The notes under the pieces: model-generated | Database searches by the model: none | Told to the model about the DNA's origin: nothing | What the model saw: only the letters and a program-made list of their open reading frames with translations | Position numbers and translations under genes: made by a program | Shown here: positions 3,061 to 50,664 of the stretch, in pieces | Numbering within the stretch: the first letter of the stretch is position 1 | How the letters are laid out: each line of letters begins with the position of its first letter | Source: Octopus bimaculoides | Lineage: Eukaryota | Assembly (NCBI RefSeq): GCF_001194135.2 | Contig: NC_068986.1 | Coordinates: 70,644,550 to 70,708,549, forward strand | DNA length: 64,000 bases | Direction: 5' to 3'

Positions 3061-3773
3061 ACCTATAGAGCTTAGGATCTGTTCTTTTTATTTCAAAGTT
3101 TGATGTGAGCTGTGTATTTCAACACTAACTTCTTTCACATCCCTGCTAGCACAGTCTAAAAAAACTTCCCAAAGTACTTTTTCATAACTTTCATTATAAA
3201 TTTACGGAGTTATTGCAATTATCACAATAAATCATGATTTTAGTTCTATACAGCATTTTGATAAAAATAAAGAACCAAGACTGTCAACAACAGTATGTAA
3301 AAGTTTTGTATTTTTTCCTAGACATCTAAACTGCCTCTTTTGCAACCTTTCTCCTATTATCAAGTAATGTAAATCAATTACTAAAAGTATATGATTACAA
3401 AAACACAGCTTTTTGTACAGCAGATTGACTGTGAGATAAGGTGGTGAGCATAGTGATTGCAATGTATTGTACTATTACGCCTAACACAGATGAATAAATA
3501 GTGCTTATAATAGGGAAGAGACTGATGTAACTGTAGATGCTCCAACAATTCGAGTTTTTCTAAACCTTGCATGAGCAAAGTGGATAAATACCTGCAAAAT
3601 TTTATATCAACTTTTCTAAATAAGTAGAAGTTGAATATATTTTGAAAACTTGAGCTATCATAATGAATTGTTGGTGGGATTGTTCTACAACTAGACATTC
3701 TTTCTTCCTATTGCCAGCCTCTAAATAATAAAGTAGAACAGATATCTCTATTCAGCAGGGTAGCTGCTTCCAT

Positions 3774-4130
3774 TTATTGCCTCCGCCTTAGCAAAGGTAT
3801 TGTTTTCAGTCGTGTTTGTTTGTTTGTCCATTGACAAGGTATCTCAAGAACTGCTGGATGGATTTGGATGAAACTTTCAGAGATGTTTGGCCTTGTGACT
3901 GGCACAAACAGATTAGATTTTGGGATCAATCCGGTAATAGACAAGGATTCTAGATTATTTTTCCTGTTTTTTTTTTTTAATTTTTGAGAGCGGTCAGGTT
4001 CATTTTTAGTATTCTCGTTTGTGAGAGCAGTCGAGTTTATTTCAGATATTCTCATTTTAAAAATCATCTCTGGCTAATCGTTGAGAGGACGTTGGTGTTG
4101 TCTTGGTGAAGGTTTGCGCTCTGAGTGCTC
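3774..4130 (+). mobile_element. Non-autonomous HINE/DINE-1-like (Helentron-associated) element
   Basis: It has a 5' cctccgcc and a degenerate 3' complement, an internal (GTTT)n microsatellite and a 3' short hairpin. The same family recurs at 23549-23730 and 24330-24525. The superfamily assignment is an inference. Confidence 0.6.
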
Positions 4131-7100
4131 GTTTCATTTGCTTTTATTTTTTTTGTTAATAACTTAATTACAATATTGTTAAATTTCATAATGCATTATC
4201 TTATAACCTCATAACACTTTCTTTTATTATCAATATAGTCTTTCATTAAAATTTAAATACAAAACATGTAAGGTAATTAAACTATGCAATATTTCAGATT
4301 AAAATTCAAGAATTTGACCTAACATTTAAATACACTGAGAGTCAATCTATCGTAAAAATAAAATCTCGCAAAATGATGTTTAGGTTATGACACCAACTAC
4401 CAAAATATGATAGATTAGCACAACGACTGCTACACTTAACTGCAACTTGAGTTTTGTAATATTAGTCGAAACTAATTTAGCATCAAATGATATCAGATTT
4501 TTTTCTTAACAATTATAAGAATTTAAGGAATAAGCATTTCTCGTGTACACATTAATTTATACAATTTTTCTTTCACAGATATCTATGAAATGCAGCCTCC
4601 CTATCACTTAATTACAATTTCAAAACTTTTACCTTGTGTGTATTTATCAAAGTTACTTTTAAGAACATTTAAAAAACAGTACATACTAAATTTAAACAAG
4701 AATGTAATATTATTACATGCAGAAATTGAAGACAATGACAAAAAGTGGCAAAGTTGCCATGACATACTGAAAACCATGGGACCAATGGCAGACAGACGCT
4801 TGGAAGCCATGATCAGGGCGGTGGGATTGGCGGCTCCACCACCTCATGGACAGATGAATATGTTCACAATGGACATGGTCACATGGTAATGGTCAGGTAA
4901 GCATGGTCAGGAATTGGAACTGGCAAGGGAGACCATGGGAACATGGTTAATACCAAAGGCGAAACAGGCCTGGCTATCGGATCATGCTCGGTCTCAAACC
5001 GGATCAGGCTTTTCTGCGGCATTTGGCTAGTCTGCTAGTTTACCACAAATGAAATGTATTAAATGCACATGCAAAAACTATTTTAAAAACAACCTTAAAA
5101 CAGTCACTAGAATTACAATATGTTTATAACATCAAATTGTAAGAAGAGGCGGGCACAAATGAGGAAATAATGTACTAGTTTACTAATAAAAATTTATTAA
5201 AAACAAATAAAAAGGAAATCAAGACATTTTTACTTTTAAAAATGTCATTATTAGATATTGCTTTAATCTTATATTCTTTCAACTAATTCATTATGCTAAA
5301 GATGCAATTAAAATCAATGTAATTGAACTCATTATGATTGAAAATTTTCAAAAATGGTTTAATGTGAAAACTAACAATATTTTTATCTTAGATATTATTT
5401 TTATCTTACATATTTATGAAAGGGTGGTTTGAACTTAAAATCATAATTTCATCATCATTAAAAACTTATAAATATGTATATTATATAAAAATAAAAAGAA
5501 ATAAACATAAAACAAATGATAAAGTTCATTTTAACTGCAATAACAGTCTGTTACTAATATATCATAGTTCAAGAGAGTACAATCTAAAATTATTTTTCTT
5601 TTAAAAAGTTTAATACTATATTAATAAGTAAACAACTATCTTGTAAAAAGGTAGTCAAACCTAAGAAGCATAGTACAACAATGAAACAAGAAATTAGAGA
5701 TGGCTTTCTTTCAAGAAAATCATTCTAAAATTTTTACACCTGAAAATAAAAAATATTTCATTAAAATAGTCCTACAAGAACATAATTTGGGCTAGTGACT
5801 AAATCTGTCTACAGTATTTATTAAATTGAAATGAATTTGTGAAATTATTACACAAATGAAAACAATATCTACAAATTATTAAAAGCTGAAGTACAACTTT
5901 ATTTTTTCATTAGTGAAACTATATTAAAATTAACCCACAGAATATCAAGTTAGCTGGTTACCATTCTGCACCATTTAGTTTACAAATAGATAGAAGTTGT
6001 ATCTCACACTTAATGTTTTCTTTTTTGCTTTGTTTTGGGTTGTCTTTACCTTCCCTCTGGAGTTGGCAGGTAAAATGAAAAAGCAGAAACTTCAGATTTA
6101 TGTGCCCTAATTACCTTGCTAAATGCCATCCAGACTACACAACAGACCCTGCTTCACAACACTATCTAACAGAAATAGTCTGTGAGAGAATAAAGATTAT
6201 ACTATAATTAAATCAGAGGTGAAAAGCAGCACCCATGACCCTTTTCAGGGCAGATGAGATTTGTAAGAGGAGGTTAGTCTCAGACCAGAGAGCTGGCCTA
6301 TAATTAACCAATAGTTACTGTAATTATCCACTTCTAATAAATGAATAGATCTTTGACAGGTATACAATATAAATTCCATAGAACTTTCAATAAATGGAGA
6401 GTAATCATTAATAGCTTGTAAATAATTATTTGCTATTTTTGTACAATTTCTGACCCAAGCTAATGAAAACTTGTCTTCATAGAAAACTTGTCTGATATAA
6501 AATCAAACAATTGGGGAAAATAATGTAATATTCTATTAAGATCCAAAATTATATATAGGAGTGTAAAGGTAGGGTTTAATATCTAAAATTTTACCATTAA
6601 ACATTATTGTAAATAACCATAATGCTTCCTTTCATAAAATACTAAAATTCTTTCAATGCACAGAGTTAAACAGCCAGCTGCTATAGTTATTTTCTTAAAA
6701 ACTCCACACCAAATTAGTATTACTATAATTGGTTTTTATAATTATATCATTAAGTTGTCAATTTTCCACAAGGACTTTTACTTAAAGATTACAAGTTAAA
6801 TTCCATTATTTGTTTCCAGTTTAAGCTGTTTCACATAAATATGAGAAATCTTTCTGGCTAATCATTTTCTTAGCAAAAGAGCAATTTTGTCTTCCATTTT
6901 ACATTGATAGTTTCATGTAAAAAGTTCCCTGTAAGTATGTTATATTCTAAATTATTCTTAAAGTAGATTTTTAAAAACTGATTTTTGAAACCAACAGTTC
7001 AGCTATGAAGTTGCAGGGGCAGACTGAAAAGCAAGTCAGGTAGTTTGTCTGTGCAAGTAGAAACGTTTAACTTCTATACTTAAATAAATAACATAGGATA

Positions 7101-10219: not shown

Positions 10220-10260
10220 CTCGGCATCTCGGCGGTCTTCATAGTCAACAAAAGCATAAG
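10220..10260 (-). CDS. SR-type splicing factor, coding exon 3 (RNP1 region)
   Basis: The reverse strand reads tatatttcag|CT TAT GCT TTT GTT GAC TAT GAA GAC CGC CGA GAT GCC GAG|gtatgt = (A)YAFVDYEDRRDAE. This is an RNP1-like motif plus the DAE helix motif typical of SR RRMs (41 nt, ends in phase 0). Confidence 0.9.
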
Positions 10261-12546: not shown

Positions 12547-12960
12547 ATGAAAAGGGCAAACTGTTTGCAACTATCAATTACAAAAGCTACTTCTAGATAC
12601 AGTTATCCTCATCTGTACACATCAAATGTCTGTACCAACACAATCTTCTCTCTTGCATACTACATCAGATTCCTCTTATACCCAATTTCTCTCTCAGCAC
12701 ATTGTACTAATGTCTTTCATGCACACTTAGATTTTATATTTAAAGCAGCATGCTTGCTTCATTTATTTCTAGTTTTCTCAAGTTCTCCAGGCCCATGTCC
12801 AACTATCTAGACTTTTAAATTCTAAGTTTAGCTTCCATATCTGGAATTTCCTCAATAGATTCAGCTATGACAACTATACCATCAGCATGTAGGACTTCCC
12901 ATAGACAACTAGTTTTAAAATCCTGTTTATAGCCTGAAGGACTATAATGAATAAGAGATG
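12547..12960 (-). mobile_element. RTE LINE degenerate fragment
   Basis: Homologous to the RT C-terminal/3' region of the adjacent RTE (e.g. tacatcagattcctcttataccc, also seen near position 60). Confidence 0.6.
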
Positions 12961-15837
12961 CAAATGATCTTATGGTTTCTAATACTAACTTCAGAAAACC
13001 TGCCAGCTACCTATTCACCTACCAATCTGGTGGACACACTTGTCAAATTGATTACATCCTCAACAGGAAAAGGGAAAGATGGCTACTTATAAATGCCAAA
13101 ACCTTCCCAGGTGAAGAATGCACCCCACAACATAGATTAGTAGTTAGCGACTTCAGGATCAGGGCTAAATGGATGACCAGAAGACGGCCAGCATGGGGAA
13201 GAAGGGTCTGGAAGCTTAAGGATCCTGCGAATGGACAGAGATTTAGAGATGTATTACTCGAAGCTTTTGACAAAATAGAGGGGGATATAACATGATGTGG
13301 AAGACAACTGGAGGTTTCTATGGGACAACCTGTTGCAGGCTACTGACCAGATGTGTAGATGGTGCAAAGTCCCCTCTTGACCCAAGGTAACATGGTGGTG
13401 GAACAATGTAGTTGATAGGGCCATTAGGGAAAAGAAATAGGCATGGAAGGACTGGAAGAACGGCAGAAGCAGGGAATTGCATCAGATTGCCAGAAGGGAA
13501 GCTAGGAGACAGGTTTACTTAGTCAGAGGGAAAGCAGATAAGAAAAAATTTGCCAATGTTCTGCGTCATGAGGACCAAAGACTTGAAGTGTTTTGTGTTG
13601 CAAGACAATGTGTGAGAGAGAATCGTGATATCACAGAAAAGAAATGTGTCCACATGGATGATGGCTCACTTGCATTTAATGAGGCTGCAAGGAGACTTGG
13701 AGATGCCACAATGAAAGGTTGCTAAATGAAGAGAATGAATGGGAGAGAGTCTGCTGAATGTTGACCCAACAGAGGGACCAGCTATCCGAATTGACAGTAC
13801 CTTGGTAGATAAAGCAATTAAGGGTATGAAGACAGGAAAAGCCCCCGGCCCATCAGAAATCACCGCAGAAATGCTTAAAATATCTGGCGGTGTTGATTAT
13901 AGTCTAGTCACCCGTATAGTCAATAAGGTGATACATGGAGGAGTCATACCCAATGACTGGTGTAGCAGCACCATAATCAACTGCTACAAAGGTAAAGGTG
14001 ATGCATTAGATACAAATAATTACAGAGGTATCAATTTGTTAGATCAGGTAATGAAAGTCACAGAGAGGGTCACAGCCCAATTAATTAGGGAGAGAGTCAG
14101 TCTAGACGAGATGCAGTTTGGGTTTGTGCCAGGGAAAAACACCACTAATGCTATATTTCTGGTAAGACAGCTGCAGGAGAAACCTCTGTGCCTGGCTTTC
14201 GTTGACATGGAAAAAGCCTATGACAGGGTCCCCCAATCCCTTATCTGATGGTCAATGCAGAAACTAGGGATAGATGAGTGGTTAGTGAGAGCTGTACAAG
14301 CTATGTACAGGGACACTGTCAGTAAGGTAAGGGTTGGCAATGAGTACAGTGAAGAATTCCGGGTAGGGGTCCACCAAAGATCAGTCTTCAGCCCCTTCTT
14401 ATTCATCATAGTCCTCCAGAGAAATTGAAGACAGCATGCCTCTGGGAGCTTCTCTATGCTGATGACTTTGCTCTAATAGCTGAGTCACTATCAGAACTAG
14501 AGAAGTTTCAGATGTGGAAGCAAGGTCTAGAATTGAAGGGCTTTAGAGTCAATCTAGCAAAAACCAAAGTCTTAGTAAGTAGGAAGGTAGACAAACCACA
14601 AATCCCTTCAGGTCGATGGTCCTGCTTGATCTGTAGAAAAGGTGTAGATAGAAACTCCACAAAATGCACCCAGTGTAAGCTATGGACAACATAAGAGGTG
14701 CAGCAATATCAAAGGAGGGTTAATGCTCAGGAGCAGTAAACACTGAAAATGTGCAGAAAACAACTTCCGTCATATTCCAGGGGGAAAAACTACAAGTAGT
14801 TGATAGCTTCCATTACCTAGGTGACCAAGTCAGGAGCGGGGGTGGTTGCTCTGAGAGTGTAGCTGCTAGAATAAGAATAGCCTGGGCAAAGTTCTGAGAG
14901 CTCCTACTTCTGCTGGTGACAAAGGGCCTCTCGCTCAGAGTAAAAGGTAGACTGTATGATGCATGTGTGTGAACATGCCATGCTATATGGCAGTGAAACA
15001 TGGGCCATGACTGCTAAGGACATGCGTAAGCTTGCAAGGAATGAAGCTAGTATGCTCTGCTGGATGTGTAATGTCAGTGTGTATACACAACAGAGTGTAA
15101 GCGCCCTGAGAGAAAAGTTGGACATAAGAAGGATCAGATGTAGTGTGCAAGAGAGATGACTGTGCTGGTATGGTCATGTGTTGCATACGGATGAGGACAG
15201 CTGTTGAAAAAGTGTGAAACCCTAGCAGTAGAGGGAACCTGTGGAAAAGGTAGACCAAGGAAGACTTGGGATGAGGTGTTGAGGCATGACCTTCGAACAT
15301 TGGGCCTCACCAAGGTGATGACAAGTGACCGAGACCTTTGGAGGTATGCTATGCTTGAGAAGACCCGGCAAGCCAAGTGAGACCATAACCGTGACCTATG
15401 CCAGTGTAGCATAACCAGCCCATTTAAGAGTATTCTTCAATCATTGAGCAATAAACTGCACTTGCGAAGACCGATTGAGGCAAGGAAAGTCGTTGTCGTG
15501 GCCAATGACAGTACCGCCTGATTGGCATGTAAAAAGCACCATTCAAGCGTGGTCATTGCCAGTGCCGCCTGACTGGCTCCAGTGCTGGTGACACATAAAA
15601 AGCACCATTCAAGCGTGGCCAGTACCAGTACCGTCTGACTGGCCTTTGTGCTGGTGGCAGTAAAAAGCACCCACTACACTCTCAGAGTGGTTGGCATTAG
15701 AAAGAGCATTCAGCTGTAGAAACTCTGCCAGATCAGATTGGAGCCTAGTGCAGCCTTCTGGCTTGCCAGCCCTCAGCCAAACCATCCAACTTATGCCAGC
15801 ATGGAAAGCAGATGTTAAACGATGATAATGATGATGA
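12960..15837 (+). mobile_element. RTE-clade LINE, 5'-truncated, frameshifted ORF2 plus 3' UTR with (GAT)n tail
   Basis: Broken ORFs include QIDYIL, KAPGPSEITAEMLK, NYRGINLLDQVMKV, LAFVDMEKAYDRVP and LWELLYADDFAL. The 3' UTR has about 3 internal tandem units and ends in aaacgatgataatgatgatg. Confidence 0.95.
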
Positions 15838-15949: not shown

Positions 15950-17500
15950 TGGCTTGTTCAACTCTTACAAGCCATTTGTCAATGCTTAGTTTCCTTAGTG
16001 ACCACCAAATTACCATACATGGTATCCTGTCAAAGGCCTTCTCCAAGTCAGGAGTAATGGTTTATTCTTAGCTTGGTGTTTCTCCTGCATCATCTGGACA
16101 TGAAGCAAAATTGTATTGCAACTCCCTCCATACCCTTCATAACCTGATCCAGTCATTAGATTCTTCGATAGCTGCTTCTCTCTAAGGCATCTCCTTTGCC
16201 TTTGCAGCAGTTTACAATGATACTGCTATGCCAGTCATTAGGTATGACTCTTTCTTGTATAACTTGATTAACTAACTGGGTGATAATCATGTCACTCTAC
16301 CTCACCAGATATTTTGAGCATCTCCACAACCATCCCGGATGGACCTGCGACTATCCTTCTAATACATCCTTGATGGTTTTATTTACCTCACTGCTGTGAA
16401 CTTGAATTGCTGGTTGTTCTGCAGAGTCAGCAAGTGGTAGCCCTACTTTATCCCTATACATTCTCCACATTCAGTGGCCTCCCATAATAGCACTTCCATG
16501 TCACTCATTTTTTTCTTCTACATCCATGGCAAGTATGCCTTTATCCTTCTAAATAAACTTCCTCTCAATGACATCTTAAATCTCTATCATAAACTGTCTT
16601 GTAATCCTGACATGTGCGAACTTCCTCTTTGCCTCACCCATAGCCAAGTATACCTATCACCTAGCAACCCTTCTAGTGATTTGATAATGCTGACACCTTC
16701 CTTTCAGGCTTTCCAAGTCTGTCACATAGCCTTTACTGCCCTATCAACTGCATTATTTCACCACCATATTACTTTCAGATCCGCTGAGACTTTGCCCCAG
16801 TCACATGTCTGATTTGTAGCCCTAGGCATGCTATTTTGCAGAAGTTCCTGGTTTCCATCTATGCTACAAGGTCTTCTTTTCTATTGCCAAAATCTGTTCC
16901 CATTTACAAGACCTTTTAGTTTCCATATCTTCCTTCCCTATGTCACATTTTGTTTCTGTGTCAACCTAGCTCTGATTCTGAAGTCACTAGCCACTAATCT
17001 ATGTTGTATGGTGCTTTCTTTGCCAAGAAAGGCTTTATATTTACAGTAACTCCTCTGTCCATTTTCTTGGTGAGAATGTAATTTATCTGATTTGTGTGTA
17101 CGCCAGATTGATAGGTGATGGGGTGGTTAGCCAGTTTCCTAGTGGTGTGTGTTGCAAATTGTTAGATCAGTCGCATCACAGAACTTCAGGAGCTGTACAC
17201 CCTCCTCATTTCTTGCACCATAGCCATAACCTCCATGTATGTCATGGAAATCATTATCATATTGGCCAACATGACTACCGAAGTTGTCAGTCACAATGAA
17301 GTAACTGTCAACCAGCATTGAATTAGTCTACAAAAGGGTTTCATAGAAGCAGCCCATCTGTTCTTCTGTGCATCTTTCCTGTGAGGCATATGCAGAGATA
17401 ACCATCACTTTTGAGTTGCCTTTAATTTGTCTCTTAATTATCCTATTGCATACCCTGGCTACCTGAAATACATTTTTTTATCCTTTTCTCAGCTAACAGT
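15950..17500 (-). mobile_element. RTE LINE fragment (APE endonuclease to pre-RT region), inverted relative to the 12960 copy
   Basis: The minus strand gives GVGILLAEKR...VISAYASQ (APE-like) near 17400-17500, and segments homologous to 13100-13900. Confidence 0.8.
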
Positions 17501-18658: not shown

Positions 18659-18670
18659 CCATTTCAGCAC
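18659..18670 (-). CDS. SR-type splicing factor, 12-nt microexon (G-A-E-M)
   Basis: The reverse strand reads tttatttttcag|GTGCTGAAATGG|gtaagt, with a consensus acceptor and donor and phase 1 at both ends. It joins exon 1 and exon 3 in frame, giving ...CEIKYGAEMAYAFVDY. Confidence 0.8.
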
Positions 18671-26572: not shown

Positions 26573-27479
26573 AGATGGATACTGAAAGAAAATGCTGCAT
26601 AATATAACATGAAGTAGAGACTGCTAGAAAAAGGCAGGCTTTACCTCAACAGCAATAAGAGAAGCAGATTTTGTTAGGTATTATCTCCCTCTAGCTACAC
26701 AACAAAGCTCTTTAGTTGTAATCATTGTTACTAGGTAAATGTAAATTTTTGTTAAATATTTACCTTGTTATAGCTGCTATGTAAATAAGTATCTACATAT
26801 AACTTGCATTATATAAAAATTCACTACAATGACTGTTACCAAAACACAGAAGTACTTGTGTAAATACAAAAACAAATAAAAAATGCGACAATCCAGTTAT
26901 GCTGGAGTTTCACTGAATGATTGAATGAAATGAGTGATTGACTGATAAGACTTGATAGACATCCACTGGGTGGATAAATAGACAAGTGGGTGGATATATT
27001 TGACAGACAGATAATCTAAGAGTTAATATTTATTGTTTATACTAAATGTATAAATATTTAGCCCTTGATCAGACAAGATCAAGTGGATACATGATCAAAA
27101 ATTTTTTAATCATGATCATCTCATTTTTTGGGGGTGGGTGGGGGAGACAATATTTCAAATACTACATTGAGCGTTTACACTTGGATATTTGAACACATGC
27201 AAGCAAACATTTACATAACCCTTTCAACAACCCACTCACTTTTCCTATCAAGTATAAAACTTCCAGAGCTGCCAAAATCAATGTAGGTATAATGGAAGGT
27301 AGGTCTGGAGTGATTGTTAAATGCTGGAGCTGAGACATGTAGACACCATATGGGTAAAGGTATAAATTTTTCTGGGTAGGCAGTATGTTAGTGGAGTAAG
27401 CATACTACTAACAGAGAAACTGCTAAAGTGATTGAGATAGAGTATGGAGTGGAATCATTAAACTTAGAGTAGCTTTAAT

Positions 27480-29810
27480 TAATGTCACAGCAACATTTAT
27501 CTCTGCATATGCTCTACAATCTGAATTGGAAAATGGACAGAAGGACCAATCCCATGAAACCCTCTTGCAGACTACCTTGATGATGAATATCATGATTGGA
27601 AGCATGGAGGTTAGTTCAAGGAATGAAGAGAGAACAAGGTTGCTGGAGTGCTGAAACACTAATGATTTCATAATTTGCAAAACTTTAGAAAACCATCTAG
27701 CTACCTGATGACCTATCAATCTGGTGAACACACAAGCTAGAGAGACTTCATACTCTCTAGAAAATAAGATAGACAAATAAATGTAAATGTTAAGTCTTTC
27801 TTAACACAGGTCAGTGGTTAGTGACTTCAAATTTAGAGCTAAACAAATTCAGAGACACAAATCAGTTTGGCAAAAAGTATGGAAACTTAAAGTTCCATTG
27901 AACAGTTAGGAATTTAAAAAAAGTACTAATTGAAATATTTGATAATAGGAAGAAAGAAATAAAAGACTTGAGCATAGAAGACAACTAGCATTTCCTACAG
28001 TATGACCTGTTGAGGGTTACAGACTAAGCTTGTAGCTGGTACAAGGTTCCTAAAAGACTGAAGGTAACATGGTAGTAGAACAATGGGACAAACAAAGCTA
28101 CAATAGCAAAGAGACAGACTTAGAAAGGCATGAAGAAAAGCAGCAGGGAACTATAGCAGGTAGCTAGAAGAGAAACTAGGCAACAGGTATACATAACAAT
28201 GCGAAAAACAGAATATAAGAGGTTTGCCAATGTTTAACAGAATGAGGATCATAGGTGTGAAGCATTTTGGATTGCATGGCAGTGTACCAGAGAAAATCAA
28301 AACATTGTGGGTGAGAAGTGGGTACCAAATGCTATTTAAAAAAAGGCTACTAAATGTGAAGAATGCATGAGAGAAACAATGTCTTCCCAGCATAGACCCA
28401 AGAGACAGCAGTGTGAGAAAAAAAATGGAAGGATATGAAGTTGGTCCATCAGGAACTATTGCTGAAATACTCAAAATATCTGGCAGAGTAGTGCTAAAGA
28501 ATGCATGAGAAAAACAATGTCTTCCCAGCATAGAGCCAAGAGAGGAACCAACAATTCTAATAGACAGCAGTGAGAAAAAAATGGAAGAGTATGAAGTTGG
28601 TCCATCAGGAATTACTGCTGAAATACTCAAAATATCTGGCAGAGTAGTGCCCTATACAGTTAATCAGATTGTGCAGGAAGGTGTCTTACCTAATGACTGG
28701 CACAGTAGCATCATATTCAGCTGTTACAAGGATAAAGGCAATACCGTAGAAAGAGATAATTACAGAGGTACCAAATTGCTGAACCAGATCATGAAAGTTA
28801 CGGAAAGAGTTAGCCTAGATGAGATGCAGTTCACCTTGTGCCAGGAAGAAGTATTACTGATGCCATCTTCCTAATGACCTCATCCTTATAACTGAATCTG
28901 TAATAAGATTAGAGAAATGCCAGTTGTGGAAGAAAAACCTGAAATCAAAGAGTCTCAAAGTTAACTTACCAAAAACTGTATTACTAAGTAAGAAAACAGA
29001 CAGGACTCTACTTCCAGCAGGGAAATGGCCTTGCTCAATACGTAGAAAATGAGTAGACATAAATTCCATATGATGAACCCAGGGCAAACTATGGACACAC
29101 AAGAAGTACAGTGGAAGTATAGGCAGGTTGACAGAGAAAGTAGACTTTGTATGTGGTAGATACTCATGAGCAACAAGCACTAATAGTGATTGGCTATTAG
29201 ATACTCTTAAATGTACGAGGGAATTCCTGAAAATAGTAGATAGCTGCTGTTACCTAAGTGATCTAACTGACAGTGATTAAGGATGTTCTGAAATTATAGT
29301 AGCTAGAGTAAGAGCAGGTTAAAGAAAGTTCAGAGAGCTACTACTATTGCTGATAACAAAAGATTTCTCTCTCAGAGTAAAAAGCAGACTGTATAATGCT
29401 TGGGTACAAAACACAATGCTACATGGTAGTGAGACATGAGCACTGAATGCCAAGAACCTGCGAAAACTAGAAAGAAAAGAAGCATCTTCTGCTGGAAGTG
29501 CAATGCCAGTATGAATGAATGACAAATTACAAATGTGTACAAGGGAAATCAGATGTAGTGTGCAAGAAAAGATTGCATTGGTATGAACATATGATACATA
29601 CAGATGAGCACAGCAATATAAAGAGGTGATAATTTGCAGTGGCTGGGACCTGGAAGAAAGATACTCAGAAAAATACAAGACAACGTGAAGATTGATCTAT
29701 CTTAGGATAGTGAGCCTATCAGAGATAATAAAAGACCAAAGATAATTGAAGACGCACATTGCTTGAGGAAACCTAGTGACTTATGCAACAAGCATGGTGA
29801 AACTGATGCT
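27480..29810 (+). mobile_element. RTE LINE, degenerate ORF2
   Basis: GPSGITAEILKISG, NYRGTKLLNQIMKV and MLHGSETWAL in broken frames. It contains an internal ~135-bp tandem duplication at 28360-28650. Confidence 0.85.
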
Positions 29811-29959: not shown

Positions 29960-30140
29960 ACAAATATTGATTTCAAATTTTGGTACAAGGTCAGCAATTT
30001 TGGGAGAGGAGATAAGCCGATTACATTGACACTTCCCCAGTTTTCAACTGATACTTATTTTATCGACCCCAAAAGGATGAAAGGCAAAGTTAACCTCGGC
30101 AGAATTTGAACTCACAATGTCAAGATGGATGAGATGCCCC
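29960..30140 (-). mobile_element. tRNA-derived SINE, family B
   Basis: Reverse complement of the 24564 family. Confidence 0.7.
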
Positions 30141-31099
30141 ATTACTACATATATTATCACCCTTTCTGTTCTGCCACTCATCACTCCTTACTTCCTGGGC
30201 CACTTCTTACTGTCCTCCATCCTTCATTCTTCTTACTGTCACCCACTAGCTCACCAATGACCACTTTCATCCCTATCTACCTATGACTATTTCTATCCAT
30301 CACTCACTCCAGCTTACTCTGGCAAACTTTACCCATCCTTCTTGATTCTTCTGGCCCCACATTCTTTCCAATTTGCTTACATGAACATGTTACCTAAGGT
30401 AACCCTCAGCACCAACATCTTTCGTTCTTTTCTCTAGCATCATACCCTCATCCCACTCAAATATATTGTGGGGTAAGAGGAGGTAAGTCCTAAATTTGCT
30501 CCTACTTAATCCACTCCACTGTCCTTTTTATCACTCACCGACTCATTCTCACTAACTATGTCACTACTTTTTCTCTTCAATTAATCCTTTCCCTAACGCT
30601 CTAAATTTCTCAACTAACACTCTACCAACAATAAGCCTGCTCCTCCAATCATACTTTAACTTCTCAATACCTTACCTAAAGTCACCACTCTTTCTCCTAT
30701 TCTCCTTCTCTGACAAAGACTTTAGTCTTGCAAGTTACAATCCAACCTCACTAATGCTGGTACCACAAAAAAGCACTCCATACACTGTAAAGTGATTGGC
30801 ATTAGGAAGTCATAGAAACCATGCCAAAAAAAGATCAAGACAATATCCACAGACCCATTGGATCCTGCCAAAGTGTTCAACCTATGCCAGTGTGGAAAAT
30901 GGGTATAAAATGATGACTTTAGTTAATGTCTTTCTGTTTTTTAACAAAGTAGGATGTGATTTGAGTGAGATTGGAAGCAATTTCTTGTAGATACCTGTGC
31001 CCCTTTTTTTTTAAAGTTTGGTAAAGTTACCAAACGTGTGTATATTGTTGCTACATCACTTCCATTTTGTATCAGTGAACAAACATTCAAATACATACA

Positions 31100-33171: not shown

Positions 33172-33632
33172 AAATGGCGATCGCACTTGAGGAGGTAGAA
33201 GTTATAAGAAACTAAATGAATTTACCCTTACTCTGGCAAGAAAAAGTATCAGAAATATACTGACCATACTTAATTTCGCATCTTTGCATACGACCATAAG
33301 GTTCGAATATTTCTTCCAAGTCTCTTTGTCGCGTATTTTTGCTCAATCTTCCTATGAAAAGCTGACCCTCCGCTCTCCGTGACATGATGGCTGCTACACC
33401 GTTGAATTACGTGTGAAAGTTGCAACACAAAAAGTGGAATTAAATATTAGAAGAATTATTTTTAGCCGCATTTAACTTTTAGTAAACCGTTTAAATGAGT
33501 ATAATAAATAAGAATTGATGACAACAATTAATGCTACTTGGATATTTCATTTTGGTTATTTATCACTTTTTTTCACTAAAGATCACAGTATTTGATATAG
33601 TTACACAAATCCTTCCAAACAGAAGATGGCGG
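33172..33632. promoter_or_regulatory. Putative promoter/first-exon region of the SR gene with YY1-type motifs
   Basis: AAGATGGCGG at 33623-33632 and AAAATGGCG near 33172-33180 flank exon 1 and match the YY1/Pho consensus. CpG is visibly retained from about 31.7 to 33.7 kb. Confidence 0.45.
33265..33385 (-). CDS. SR-type RRM splicing factor (SRSF4/5/6-like RRM N-terminus), coding exon 1
   Basis: The reverse strand reads ATG TCA CGG ... AAG TAT G|gtcagt = MSRRAEGQLFIGRLSKNTRQRDLEEIFEPYGRMQRCEIKY+G (121 nt, phase 1). It has an RNP2-like LFIGRL motif resembling SRSF4/5/6 RRM1. The exact orthologue was not assigned. Confidence 0.9.
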
Positions 33633-34689: not shown

Positions 34690-35215
34690 ATGAAAGTCTT
34701 TTTTTTTAGTCTGTGTTGTCTAAATGTTGAAAGACATAGAAATACACACACACACACAAACAAACAAACAATCCCAAAAAGATAAAAACTATATATATTA
34801 TATACGTACATACAACCTTTCTTTGAAGTTGGTGTTGTGCTGTGTTGACAGACTTGCACTTAAAATTCCTGTATTTTTAATCAGAACTTGTTAGTTACTA
34901 TAGTAACAACACTACTTATCGATCTATCTTTCACACACACACTCTTTCTCTCACTGTATTTCTCAATAACAACTTTTTCTGCTCTCTATCTTCTACTCAA
35001 AGGTCTTTTTTCAAAGTCTGTCTCTACATTGACAGAGAAACACCCTCTCACACACACACAAACAACCAAAAAAGATATCCATATATATTTTATAAATTCA
35101 TACATACAGTTTTTTTATGTGTGTTGCATTGTGTTGACAGATTTGCACTTGTTAGTTACAAAATTTGTTAATTACTATAATGACAACACTACCATTTTAT
35201 CTCTCCTTCACACAA

Positions 35216-35268
<53 letters not shown>

Positions 35269-35400
35269 GTATTTCTCTCTTGACAACAACTTTTTCTCTT
35301 TTCCTTCTTCTAATCAAAGTGAAAGTCTTATTTTTTTAACCTGTTGCATTGTCTATATGTTGAAAGATACAGAAACACACATGCACACAAATAACAAAAT
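34690..35400. repeat. Degenerate ~320-bp tandem repeat (about 2.3 units) with embedded (CA)n/(CT)n
   Basis: The motifs gttgaaaga(c/t)a(t/c)agaaa, tgtgttgacaga(c/t)ttgcactt and acaactttttct recur with roughly 310-330 bp spacing. Confidence 0.6.
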
Positions 35401-47060: not shown

Positions 47061-47676
47061 CTATATATATCTTGTCAATGTTTCATATCCAGAAAAGAAG
47101 CACTCCCTAAGGCATAGAGCAGTAATGTATTAAAAGTAATTAAGTTTGTGACTGGACATAAACTTAATTACTTTTAATATACGTGTCTGTATCCCCACCA
47201 CTGCTTCGTAACATATTCCAGTAACTTCGTGCTTCGGCAAAAGAAGCTGATGGAATAATTACCAAGATTTAAAAAAAAATACTGGGGTTGATTTGCTCGA
47301 CTAGAATACTTCATGGCGGTACCCTATCATGGCTGCAGTCTAATGGCAGAAACAAGTAAAAGATATATATATATGTGTGTGTGCAGGCATGGCCATGTGC
47401 TAAGAAGCTTGCTTCCCAATTACATGGTTCAGGGTTCATTCCCACTGCGTGACACCTTTGAGCGACCAAAGCTTTGTGAGTGTAAATATATATCAGGTCA
47501 TCCCATAAGTTGTGTCCGGTTTTACCTTTTTTAAAATTGAATGAAATTTAATAGTATTTTAGAATGTCTAATGGTATCAAAAATTATTTTTATGCATTTG
47601 TGTACATTTAAACTAATTAAATATTATTTTACAGAATAATAGAATTAAAATTTCTTTGATTAAAACCCTTTCTAAC

Positions 47677-48666
47677 ATGGAAATATCCAAAGAGCATTTA
47701 AGGCACATAATGCTTTATGAGTACAGAAAAGGAAACTCTGCCGCCGAAGCGACTCGAAACATACACTCAGTTTATGGGAAAGAATGCTTGAATGAAAGAA
47801 CTTGCAGAAGATGGTTTGCAAAATTCAGAAGTGGAGATTTCAGCCTTGAAGATGAAGATCGAAGAGGGCGTCCAGTTGAGTTTGATGATAANNNNNNNNN
47901 NNNNNNNNNNNNNNNNNNNNNNNNNNNNNNNNNNNNNNNNNNNNNNNNNNNNNNNNNNNNNNNNNNNNNNNNNNNNNNNNNNNNNNNNNNNNNNNNNNNN
48001 NNNNNNNNNNNNNNNNNNNNNNNNNNNNNNNNNNNNNNNNNNNNNNNNNNNNNNNNNNNNNNNNNNNNNNNNNNNNNNNNNNNNNNNNNNNNNNNNNNNN
48101 NNNNNNNNNNNNNNNNNNNNNNNNNNNNNNNNNNNNNNNNNNNNNNNNNNNNNNNNNNNNNNNNNNNNNNNNNNNNNNNNNNNNNNNNNNNNNNNNNNNN
48201 NNNNNNNNNNNNNNNNNNNNNNNNNNNNNNNNNNNNNNNNNNNNNNNNNNNNNNNNNNNNNNNNNNNNNNNNNNNNNNNNNNNNNNNNNNNNNNNNNNNN
48301 NNNNNNNNNNNNNNNNNNNNNNNNNNNNNNNNNNNNNNNNNNNNNNNNNNNNNNNNNNNNNNNNNNNNNNNNNNNNNNNNNNNNNNNNNNNNNNNNNNNN
48401 NNNNNNNNNNNNNNNNNNNNNNNNNNNNNNNNNNNNNNNNNNNNNNNNNNNNNNNNNNNNNNNNNNNNNNNNNNNNNNNNNNNNNNNNNNNNNNNNNNNN
48501 NNNNNNNNNNNNNNNNNNNNNNNNNNNNNNNNNNNNNNNNNNNNNNNNNNNNNNNNNNNNNNNNNNNNNNNNNNNNNNNNNNNNNNNNNNNNNNGATGGG
48601 ATTAAAAAGCTTGTAAATAGATGGAAGGAAGTCATAGATAATCAGGGAAAGTTCATTGATGATTAA
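47677..48666 (+). CDS. Mariner transposase (N- and C-termini visible, middle in N gap)
   Basis: MEISKEHLRHIMLYEYRKGNSAAEATRNIHSVYGKECLNERTCRRWFAKFRSGDFSLEDEDRRGRP ... DGIKKLVNRWKEVIDNQGKFIDD*. No stop codon in the sequenced parts; intactness is unknown. Confidence 0.65.
   Translation: MEISKEHLRHIMLYEYRKGNSAAEATRNIHSVYGKECLNERTCRRWFAKFRSGDFSLEDEDRRGRPVEFDDXXXXXXXXXXXXXXXXXXXXXXXXXXXXXXXXXXXXXXXXXXXXXXXXXXXXXXXXXXXXXXXXXXXXXXXXXXXXXXXXXXXXXXXXXXXXXXXXXXXXXXXXXXXXXXXXXXXXXXXXXXXXXXXXXXXXXXXXXXXXXXXXXXXXXXXXXXXXXXXXXXXXXXXXXXXXXXXXXXXXXXXXXXXXXXXXXXXXXXXXXXXXXXXXXXXXXXXXXXXXXXXXXXXXXXXXXXXDGIKKLVNRWKEVIDNQGKFIDD
47892..48594. other. Assembly gap (703 N)
   Basis: Run of N. Confidence 1.
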
Positions 48667-48798: not shown

Positions 48799-50664
48799 GT
48801 GTGTGTGTCTTTGTATCGGTGTTTGTTCCCCTCCCCACTACTGGTGTTGGTGTGTTTACATACCCGTTATGTAGCGGTTTGTCAAAGGAAACTGATAGAA
48901 AAAAAAGAAAAATACTGGGATCAATTTGTTTGACTAAAAATTCTTCAAGGCAATGCCCCAGCATAGCCACAGTTTAATGACTGAAACAAAAGAAAGAAGA
49001 TATATACACACACCTGTGTGAACAGGTGTGTGTATAGTTAAGGGAGATCCCAAGTAATGGCACTCTCTGGTATGACATTGGCCTACTTTTCATACCAGTC
49101 CTCCTGATGAGCTCTCTGATTGGGTTCTCCTACCTTCTGTACAGAACCAAGTGGGAAGATTGGTTGAATTGGCTCTGTAATACCATATTTTATTAATATT
49201 GATCTCCACTCTTGACATAAATTCGAGTGCCTGCTTTTTCTGATTTATGGATTTTTAGATAACTACAATATATAATATATTTCTTTTATCTCTTACTTGT
49301 TTCAGTCCGTAGACTGTGGCTTTGCTGGGGCACCACCTTGAAGAATTTTAGTCAAGTGACTCAACCCCAGTACTTTTTTTTATTTATAGCCTGCACCCAT
49401 ATATATACGATTATTATTCTTAAAAAATACATGTTTACCATGGAGTTCTGGTAATACATTTAGCTGCAGCATACCTACACATGTTCCAGAGTTAGCTGCA
49501 GTATACCTACACATATGTGCCCCAACGATTTTCTTTCCTCATAACTTTCAGAAAAACTTTCGGAATTTTTTCTCACAACCAATATTAATATAATTGGAAT
49601 CTACATCTGAAGTGTGTTTGTATATTATTTCAGTGAAACAAATATCCATTTTTCTGGAACTCATGAGTAAATAAAGTTGGTGGGGTACATTTGTGTATTT
49701 ATACCCATAGCTTTAACATAAGTAGTACTAAGATTATATTGTTATTATATATATCTACATATCGGCTTGCTTTGCTTCACTTTCATTTTGTATTTAACTA
49801 TTTAATTATCGGACTGCATCAACATCGTTTAACGTCCGCTTTCCATGCTGGCATGGGTTAGATGGTTTGACTGAGGACTGGCGAGCCAGATGGCTGCACC
49901 AGGCTCCAATCTGATCTGGCAGAGTTTCTACTGCTGGATGCCCTTCCTAATGCCAACCACTCCAAGAATGTAGTGAGTGCTTTTATGTGCCACCAGCACA
50001 GGGGCCATTCAGGCAGTTCTGGCGATGCCCATGCTCAAATGGTGCTTTTTATGTGCCACCGGCATGAGAGCCAGTCAGCAGCCCTGGCAACAATCACGCT
50101 AGGATGGTGCTTTTAACAATCCACTGGCACGGGTGCTGTCATCAGCCATGTCAGCAAATTTGATTGTTCAGTTTGCATCAAACTGGTCACAATAATGTGA
50201 ATGAGATGGGCTCAATTTTTTCACTACACATAAACCTAAATAGGATAACAGTATTTACAATGATAATTGTTTTCAATAATGAATACTAACTGCATTAAAA
50301 ATATATTGTTTTGTGCGTGTGTGTGTGTGTGTGTGTGGGTGCATGTATAAAATTTATTGGCAGTATTTAGGTAGTAATTATTCATTGCTTTATAAATGCA
50401 TGTTCTTTTGACATAATTGCATTTCATCACATTGCTATACATTACATTTTCCATTTTTTATGTTAGAGCTTATTCATGTTGCATATTTTTCTAGCATTCT
50501 TCCTACATGCATGACATGTATATACTTACACCTGTGCTACAGGAATATACGACACAATGATATCAAGCCACTGTAAAACATGTTATTTTGAAGATGGATT
50601 GTTAGCTTGAGTATATATACATAGAAAATATATAAAAATGAAGTTATATTTTGAATGCATTTAA

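Follow-up and report, generated by a model that had tools for sequence, protein, structure and literature searches.

A conserved GC-rich island in an octopus SR-type splicing-factor gene is a candidate poison exon

The DNA analysed here is a stretch of 64,000 nucleotides from Octopus bimaculoides (assembly GCF_001194135.2, contig NC_068986.1, positions 70,644,550 to 70,708,549), which we call the window and within which all octopus coordinates are given. Its minus strand carries the first coding exons of a gene for a splicing factor of the SR (serine/arginine-rich) type. The third intron of this gene contains a GC-rich island, here proposed to be a cassette exon that carries a premature termination codon (PTC), commonly termed a poison exon. 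The coding exons of the gene that fall within the window are listed below, with a slash marking each exon boundary.

33265 to 33385, minus strand: coding exon 1, encoding MSRRAEGQLFIGRLSKNTRQRDLEEIFEPYGRMQRCEIKY followed by G; donor TATG/GTCAGT, phase 1.
18659 to 18670, minus strand: microexon 2, 12 nucleotides (nt) long (GTGCTGAAATGG, encoding G-A-E-M), located by a pattern search and flanked by ttatttttcag/ and /gtaagtaa.
10220 to 10260, minus strand: exon 3, the mini-exon that encodes the ribonucleoprotein motif RNP1; peptide (A)YAFVDYEDRRDAE; DNA tatatttcag/CTTATGCTTTTGTTGACTATGAAGACCGCCGAGATGCCGAG/gtatgt; donor GAG/GTATGT.

Exon 1 is 66-83% identical to its orthologs. Microexon 2 follows exon 1, precedes the RNP1 mini-exon and has strong splice sites. 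A spliced, cDNA-like ortholog contig (L008) reads KYGAEMAYAFVDYEDRRDAEDAIRYENG, which agrees with the microexon and includes the same GAEM residues. These residues are missing from a predicted protein of Mya arenaria (P0001), and thus its gene model probably skipped the microexon. The mini-exon at 10260-10220 is numbered exon 3, as in the first-pass annotation of this DNA, because the 12-nt microexon precedes it. Exon 3 finishes on a complete codon, which corresponds to phase 0. Intron 3 extends past the start of the window, and the next coding exon (DAIRYENG...) is located outside.

The host gene is identified as an SR-type splicing factor by three observations. The Pfam family RRM_1 (RNA-recognition motif, RRM) matches the exons in the window with an E value of 2.8e-11. 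The solved structure nearest to this RRM is RRM1 of SRSF6. Finally, full-length relatives (P0002, L006 with its exon ECFKCGRPGHYARDC, and a Mya arenaria protein named RSZ32-like) combine an RRM with a CCHC zinc knuckle and arginine/serine (RS) repeats. The exons for the zinc knuckle and RS repeats of the octopus copy lie beyond the window, and the domain composition is therefore read from the orthologs. Exact look-ups of the open reading frames (ORFs) of the window and of the Mya arenaria protein found 0 contigs. Upstream of the first coding exon, at ~35200-35300 on the minus strand, there is a (GA)n-type microsatellite that translates as ERERER.

The island occupies positions 4735-5035 and has a GC content of 0.505, compared with 0.28-0.34 in the remaining intron (~28% around the island). 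The intron is AT-rich, as the first-pass annotation had described it, but it is not repeat-free as was also claimed, in that segments 3-523, 909-1080 and 3774-4138 are 68-81% identical to sequence elsewhere in the window. On the gene strand, the edge of the island reads ...ggtaaacTAG/CAG/ACTAGCCAAATGCCGCAG..., which constitutes a tandem acceptor. The TAG is at 5037-5035 and the CAG at 5034-5032, so that the candidate exon would start at 5034 or 5031. A candidate donor, ACACAAG/GTAAAAG (AAG/GTAAAA), is present at 4633/4632, where 4633 is the last exon base. The coordinates originally proposed for the island, for both acceptors and for this donor were confirmed on the minus strand. The features of the candidate exon are as follows; differences are counted against a close relative, L005, that is described below.

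4633 to 5034, minus strand: largest extent of the candidate poison cassette exon, 402 nt (3 x 134), or 399 nt if it starts at 5031.
4775 and 4768, minus strand: alternative 3' ends of the candidate exon, with donors ATG/GTTTTC (4775/4774) and TCA/GTATGT (4768/4767).
4879 to 4881, minus strand: first in-frame stop, TGA, unchanged in L005 and followed by three further phase-0 stops.
5035 to 5122, minus strand: conserved upstream intronic flank, with 0 differences in 88 nt; the nearest difference is at 5123.
4581 to 4632, minus strand: conserved downstream flank, which begins with the donor GTAAAAG and has 0 differences in 52 nt; divergence is back at 4580.
4894 to 4902, minus strand: U1-like stretch, GCUUACCUG (compare the 5' end of U1 small nuclear RNA), with a plus-strand donor, CAG/GTAAGC, as its complement; no function is assigned to it.

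The core of the candidate exon (5034-4735) is GC-rich and pyrimidine-rich, and its 3' part (4735-4633) is AT-rich. Upstream of the acceptor, a candidate branch point (UUAAU) is found ~26 nt away with no AG in between, and a UGCAUG element is present at 5073-5068. Splice sites were ranked by using a rough position weight matrix (PWM) scheme, and all such ranks are indicative only. By this measure, the donor at 4632 falls in the 93rd percentile among the 606 GT dinucleotides of the intron. An internal acceptor at 4921 (CCCTTGCCAG/TTCC) is stronger than those at 5034/5031, and entry at this site would reach a stop within nine codons. A direct repeat with 10 of 11 positions matching (ACATGCAGAAA/ACATGCAAAAA) is located at 4715-4725 and 5067-5077.

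When exon 3 is joined to position 5034 in phase 0, the resulting frame reads 51 codons (QTSQMPQKSL...LTITM) and then encounters the TGA. The distance from this stop to the 4633 donor is 246 nt, in agreement with the value of about 245 nt noted originally; to the alternative ends at 4775 and 4768 it is 107 and 100 nt, respectively. Thus, the TGA is retained whichever candidate exon end applies, and it lies more than ~50 nt upstream of a downstream junction; orthologs have later coding exons. The full 402-nt exon contains four phase-0 stops in total.

No reading frame is open across the whole conserved block defined below. A phmmer search with the six frames of the island against 1.84 billion representative proteins returned only a sibling ORF (P0009) and a chance match (P0010), and a second translated search returned only P0009. 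Pfam produced no match. A protein search with a concatenated query also came back empty; however, this negative result is unreliable because the same search missed the known sibling ORF. P0010 is a bacterial repeat protein that aligns to the phase-0 peptide of the island (FETEH..PVSP..L..F) with an E value of 1e-4, which we judge to be a chance similarity to a repeated motif. A protein-coding role for the island was rejected, because it has no open frame and its only homolog is a sibling copy of a spurious 99-amino-acid ORF on the plus strand. Likewise, a known structured RNA was rejected. In Rfam searches, run at E of 1 or less on positions 3500-6500 and across the window at the gathering threshold, the sole match was a chance microRNA-like one outside the island; ARAGORN found no tRNA, and predicted folding is unremarkable on either strand (minimum free energy z-scores of -1.67 and -1.51).

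Evidence that the element is under constraint comes from L005, a 1194-nt Logan contig from SRR11869391 that was reached via the sibling ORF P0009. L005 is unspliced and collinear with window positions 4288-5408, with an overall identity of 93.7%. The differences are distributed very unevenly.

4288 to 4582: left flank, 295 nt, 53 differences, 82% identity to L005.
4581 to 5122: block, 542 nt, 2 differences (4861 and 4942), 99.6% identity to L005.
5130 to 5408: right flank, 279 nt, 18 differences, 93.5% identity to L005.

Fisher tests of the block against its flanks give P = 4e-18 when both flanks are used and P = 1e-6 for the right flank alone. The block spans the entire candidate exon, 52 nt past the 4633 donor and ~88 nt before the acceptor, and both substitutions fall within the 402-nt candidate exon. 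The AG dinucleotides (5036/5033) and the GT dinucleotides (4632, 4767 and 4774) are all kept in L005. The block is therefore more conserved than the surrounding intron, and this conservation includes intronic sequence that directly adjoins the candidate exon. Regulated alternative exons, and SR poison exons especially, usually show such joint conservation of exon and adjoining intron (PMC4379411). Nucleotides 1-65 of L005 fall outside the alignment with the window; they show a weak resemblance to window positions 49283-49304 and 47349-47365, near a mariner-like element. This mismatch suggests a difference in transposon insertion just to the left of 4288, and not a splice junction.

More distant relatives were sought by scanning metagenome contigs with the exon-1 peptide, which yielded 41 host-derived loci. 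Four genomic contigs among them (L006, L014, L035 and L044) contain the RNP1 mini-exon together with the exon that follows it, and these represent two species pairs, L006/L014 and L035/L044. All four have the same exon structure, and in each the intron after the RNP1 mini-exon is AT-rich and contains a GC-rich island (49-61% GC). In both pairs, the island is the sole part of the intron that can be aligned.

L006 positions 5036-5431 with L014 positions 2585-2972: 72% identity over 421 nt, E 2e-52.
L035 positions 3896-4500 with L044 positions 2087-2719: 70% identity over 645 nt, E 3e-66.

The coding exons on either side of this intron are 84% and 76.5% identical between L006 and L014. The edges of these islands resemble splice sites on the gene strand. 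Exactly at the 5' edge, both pairs have a conserved pyrimidine tract and AG, which read ...TGTTGTG(T)TTTTGYAG/TGCCAGCTTTCTTTCACTA in one pair and ...TTGTGTTAATYTGTTTCAG/TTAGCCA in the other. The 3' edge has a conserved donor, CAG/GT[TG]GTAG[TC]T(T)AT, that is alike in all four species. The islands of L006, L014, L035 and L044 are 338, 329, 446 and 462 nt long, and their phase-0 stops occur at codons 82, 27, 23 and 26, respectively. Paired islands differ by insertions and deletions, some with lengths that are not divisible by three. These stops and length changes indicate that the ortholog islands are non-coding, cassette-like exons. Pyrimidine content on the gene strand is 53-60% in the four ortholog islands and 58% in the octopus island.

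The octopus island also contains a repeated short word.

4735 to 4946, minus strand: CCAU(G)-rich cluster with 16 YCAY tetramers, where Y is a pyrimidine (10 CCAU, 4 UCAU and 2 CCAC), and 7 CCAUG.

The counts of 16 YCAY and 7 CCAUG given by the first-pass annotation were reproduced on recounting. However, the accompanying expectation of ~3 YCAY holds for uniform composition only. The base composition of the island predicts 4.6, and dinucleotide-preserving shuffles predict 11.8 +/- 1.9 (11.1-12.1), against which the observed 16 has a P value of 0.025-0.08. By contrast, CCATG occurs 7 times versus 1.4-1.8 expected from dinucleotide shuffles (P of 0.001 or less). Further words in the cluster are ACCAUG (four copies) and UGACCAU (three copies). 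The cluster is the densest for YCAY on the minus strand of the window (16 versus a mean of 3.5). The maximum on the plus strand is 17 YCAY in 212 nt at 30109-30320, within a C/T-rich region of low complexity, and such counts can thus come from composition alone. All 16 YCAY are kept in L005, as is nearly everything else in the block. The P values from dinucleotide shuffles for the five islands are as follows.

YCAY: octopus exon 0.04-0.08; L006 0.11; L014 0.06; L035 0.21; L044 0.04.
CCAT: octopus exon 0.0005-0.0075; L006 0.04; L014 0.10; L035 0.016; L044 0.0045.

GCCA is enriched in all five islands, with P values from <0.0005 to 0.07. In addition, UGCC is present in 19 copies in L006 (5070-5407) and 12 copies in L014 (2620-2948), versus 5-7 expected. 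A CCAU/GCCA-rich, pyrimidine-rich body is a property common to the five islands. In the islands of L006 and L014, the sequence CCAUGCC(G/A)UGCC adjoins the conserved weak donor CAG/GU[UG]GUAG and is a candidate binding code.

Exons regulated by Nova or its homolog Pasilla reportedly carry YCAY clusters (the RNA map of Ule et al. 2006; Brooks et al. 2011), and the first-pass annotation had proposed repression of the octopus exon by Nova. The density of 16 YCAY in 212 nt does match a simple density definition of a YCAY cluster, and the exonic position would predict repression by Nova. Unlike Nova/Pasilla targets, however, the octopus exon is enriched mainly in CCAU(G) and not UCAY, the enrichment is weak versus dinucleotide shuffles, and YCAY is mostly not enriched in the ortholog islands. 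The case for Nova is weak, since the YCAY excess mostly follows dinucleotide content and the word that is repeated is CCAU(G). An SR protein encoded by the gene itself, or another protein that binds C-rich RNA, is at least as likely to be the reader. The expectation that the island is conserved was borne out at close range by L005 and by position in the four distant contigs, whereas the YCAY class as such is mostly not significant in the orthologs. Similarly, the earlier proposal of a poison exon stands in so far as an exon-like, constrained, non-coding element with a PTC lies on the gene strand of an SR gene, and it is the part concerned with Nova and YCAY that is weak.

The block at ~4581-5122 is probably a conserved, PTC-bearing cassette (poison) exon together with its regulatory flanks, in an SR gene with a single RRM and a zinc knuckle. 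From the observed features, the constraint and the position in orthologs, we infer inclusion in RNA, coupling to nonsense-mediated decay (NMD), control by a binding factor and the use of one of the donors at 4633, 4768 or 4775. With the exon spliced in after exon 3 (10260-10220) and ahead of the following RRM exon, the frame would meet the TGA at 4881-4879. Because such a message would encode only a broken RRM, its expected fate is decay by NMD; failing that, it would still be unproductive. Proteins that recognize the CCAU(G)/GCCA words repeated in the pyrimidine-rich body probably promote or prevent inclusion. The analogy of other SR genes makes negative feedback the most likely logic, exerted by the gene's own SR protein or by related factors.

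Several observations weigh against this proposal. Among 553 intronic AG dinucleotides, the acceptors at 5036/5033 score no higher than the 42nd-60th percentile, and the pyrimidine tract that precedes 5034/5031 is poor. The strongest consensus donor within 10 kb is located inside the island on the opposite strand. The 3' end of the candidate exon is ambiguous among 4775, 4768 and 4633. In the orthologs, the donor is at the 3' edge of the GC-rich part, so by analogy 4775 or 4768 may serve in place of 4633. The perfectly conserved, AT-rich segment 4735-4581 would fit either an exonic or a downstream intronic role. Conservation at close range is based on a single close relative, L005. With regard to the distant islands, a local alignment of the octopus island to them was equaled or exceeded in score by 46 of 300 shuffles, blastn detected no match between them, and nhmmer profiles of the two pairs matched neither the window nor each other. 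The correspondence is therefore one of position and architecture only. All five cDNA-like ortholog contigs (L008, L027, L031, L032 and L036) contain the productive junction only. Decay of the inclusion isoform would produce this outcome, although the outcome gives no positive evidence. A hybrid protein with the RRM of exon 3 and the phase-0 tail of the island was absent among 5.8 billion proteins.

Some of these same observations would also fit a block that never becomes part of a mature mRNA. A conserved intronic element of this kind might be a decoy exon, a silencer that causes intron detention, or an intragenic enhancer. The conservation data reveal constraint and not splicing, and both the weak acceptor and the exclusively productive junctions of the cDNA-like contigs are in keeping with such a role. 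However, the AG and GT dinucleotides are kept exactly, with their contexts, at the gene-strand edges of the island in two independent species pairs, and the pyrimidine richness on a consistent strand in five species is unexpected for an enhancer. We therefore consider a purely intronic function unlikely. The strong donor on the opposite strand raises another prospect, namely that the island is an antisense, non-coding exon, perhaps a first exon, transcribed from the plus strand. This donor (CAG/GTAAGC at 4896/4897), to which the first-pass annotation had drawn attention for the same reason, is present and is the top-scoring of 501 plus-strand GT dinucleotides in the 1-10.2 kb region by the rough PWM. 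Moreover, the plus strand is purine-rich, and a gene finder called a 99-amino-acid plus-strand ORF (corresponding to 4590-4889) in the relative. Yet acceptors on the plus strand are poor (75th percentile or lower), the conserved block continues for 226 nt beyond the plus-strand donor, and the ORF has neither a Pfam match nor a homolog beyond the sibling copy, with one of the two substitutions altering its protein. The U1-like motif (CUUACCUG), whose complement forms this donor, has not been kept in the islands of the orthologs, where the conserved splice sites occupy the gene strand. An antisense exon is accordingly given little credence.

Inclusion of the exon might instead serve to make a truncated protein, consisting of the N-terminal half of the RRM and a 51-residue tail, as in the truncated or split-ORF products of some SR genes, and not to trigger decay. 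The 402-nt length is a multiple of three, and the 51-codon tail is open and has only one residue changed in L005. Nevertheless, the tail has no homolog and half an RRM is unlikely to fold, while the stops in the orthologs, which vary from codon 23 to codon 82, and the insertions and deletions that are not multiples of three mean that no peptide is conserved. A functional truncated product is very improbable for these reasons. A neutral insertion with splice-like strings that arose by chance, such as a retroposon relic derived from a tRNA (a short interspersed nuclear element), is hardly credible. It would account for the GC richness, which is like that of the long interspersed nuclear element fragments in the window, for the weak A-box-like and B-box-like strings near 5030 and 5000, and for the direct repeat (4715-4725/5067-5077). 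The block, however, is conserved far above its flanks, unlike a neutral relic. It has no tRNA or Rfam match, and its sole translated match is the sibling copy. A multi-copy repeat had been named at the outset as an outcome that would undermine the poison-exon proposal, but no second copy of the island was found within the 64-kb window, where it is single-copy. By our own estimate, the direct repeat is expected ~0.4 times by chance in AT-rich flanks, and the A and B boxes are not beyond chance.

The proposed poison exon has clear counterparts in other SR genes. Such genes reportedly undergo unproductive splicing that is coupled to NMD (Lareau et al. 2007, Ni et al. 2007). Highly conserved PTC-bearing exons, which have arisen repeatedly, are used by every human SR gene and by many in invertebrates (PMC4379411). 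Poison cassettes in vertebrate SR genes include SRSF3 exon 4, SRSF7 exon 3a, the intron-2 exon of SRSF4/SRSF6 and TRA2B exon 2, all involving unproductive splicing coupled to NMD (PMC4379411). Like these, the octopus candidate is a long (300-460 nt), non-coding exon in an SR gene with an in-frame stop far before later junctions. Also shared are conservation that exceeds that of the neighboring intron and reaches into the flanks, suboptimal splice sites and repeated exonic words to which the regulating protein could bind. In contrast to the vertebrate examples, the octopus gene belongs to a different subfamily that has one RRM (nearest to SRSF6 RRM1) and a CCHC zinc knuckle, and the candidate exon is located in an intron that splits the RRM directly after RNP1 and not after the RRM.

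A second comparison is with SRSF5/B52, whose poison exon or retained intron is ancient and conserved across animals and fungi, as established by expressed sequence tags and NMD-deficient strains (PMC4379411). Like that site, the putative unproductive site of the octopus gene is kept by position across distant lineages as the sequence turns over, and the octopus RRM is of the SRSF4/5/6 type. The octopus gene differs from SRSF5/B52 in having one RRM and a zinc knuckle, and its candidate site is in the intron after RNP1. It is conceivable, although doubtful, that a poison exon in the post-RNP1 intron predates the divergence of the sampled lineages, with its sequence having turned over and its CCAU/GCCA code having been kept. 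If so, this would join SRSF5 intron 5 as a second deeply conserved site of unproductive splicing in the SR superfamily. Readers of the CCAU/GCCA code might then be the gene's own SR protein or a KH protein of the Nova type, the latter setting SR dosage by tissue.

Among the known ways in which the dosage of SR factors is controlled, poison exons are the main one. They have been well charted in vertebrates, flies, worms and plants, and hardly in molluscs and their relatives. The mechanism proposed for the octopus gene is already known, and its current understanding is unchanged by this case. The most interesting part is the recurrence in position among distant invertebrates, which, if confirmed, would provide a data point on how regulation can persist by position while sequence changes. 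The CCAU(G)/GCCA words, in turn, would offer a concrete handle toward the regulating protein.

The window also contains mobile-element sequence. Reading frames resembling reverse transcriptase, and copies of repeats, are found in introns of the SR gene at 12951-15400, 16000-17400 and 27400-29700 as well as at 3-523, 909-1080 and 3774-4138, with mutual identities of 68-81%. These intronic repeat copies are GC-richer than unique intron and CpG-poor (observed/expected ~0.2). A mariner-type transposase frame (MEISKEHLRHIMLYEYRKGNSAAEATRNIHSVYG...) is present at 47656-48666 and is broken by a run of N that marks an assembly gap of ~0.7 kb.

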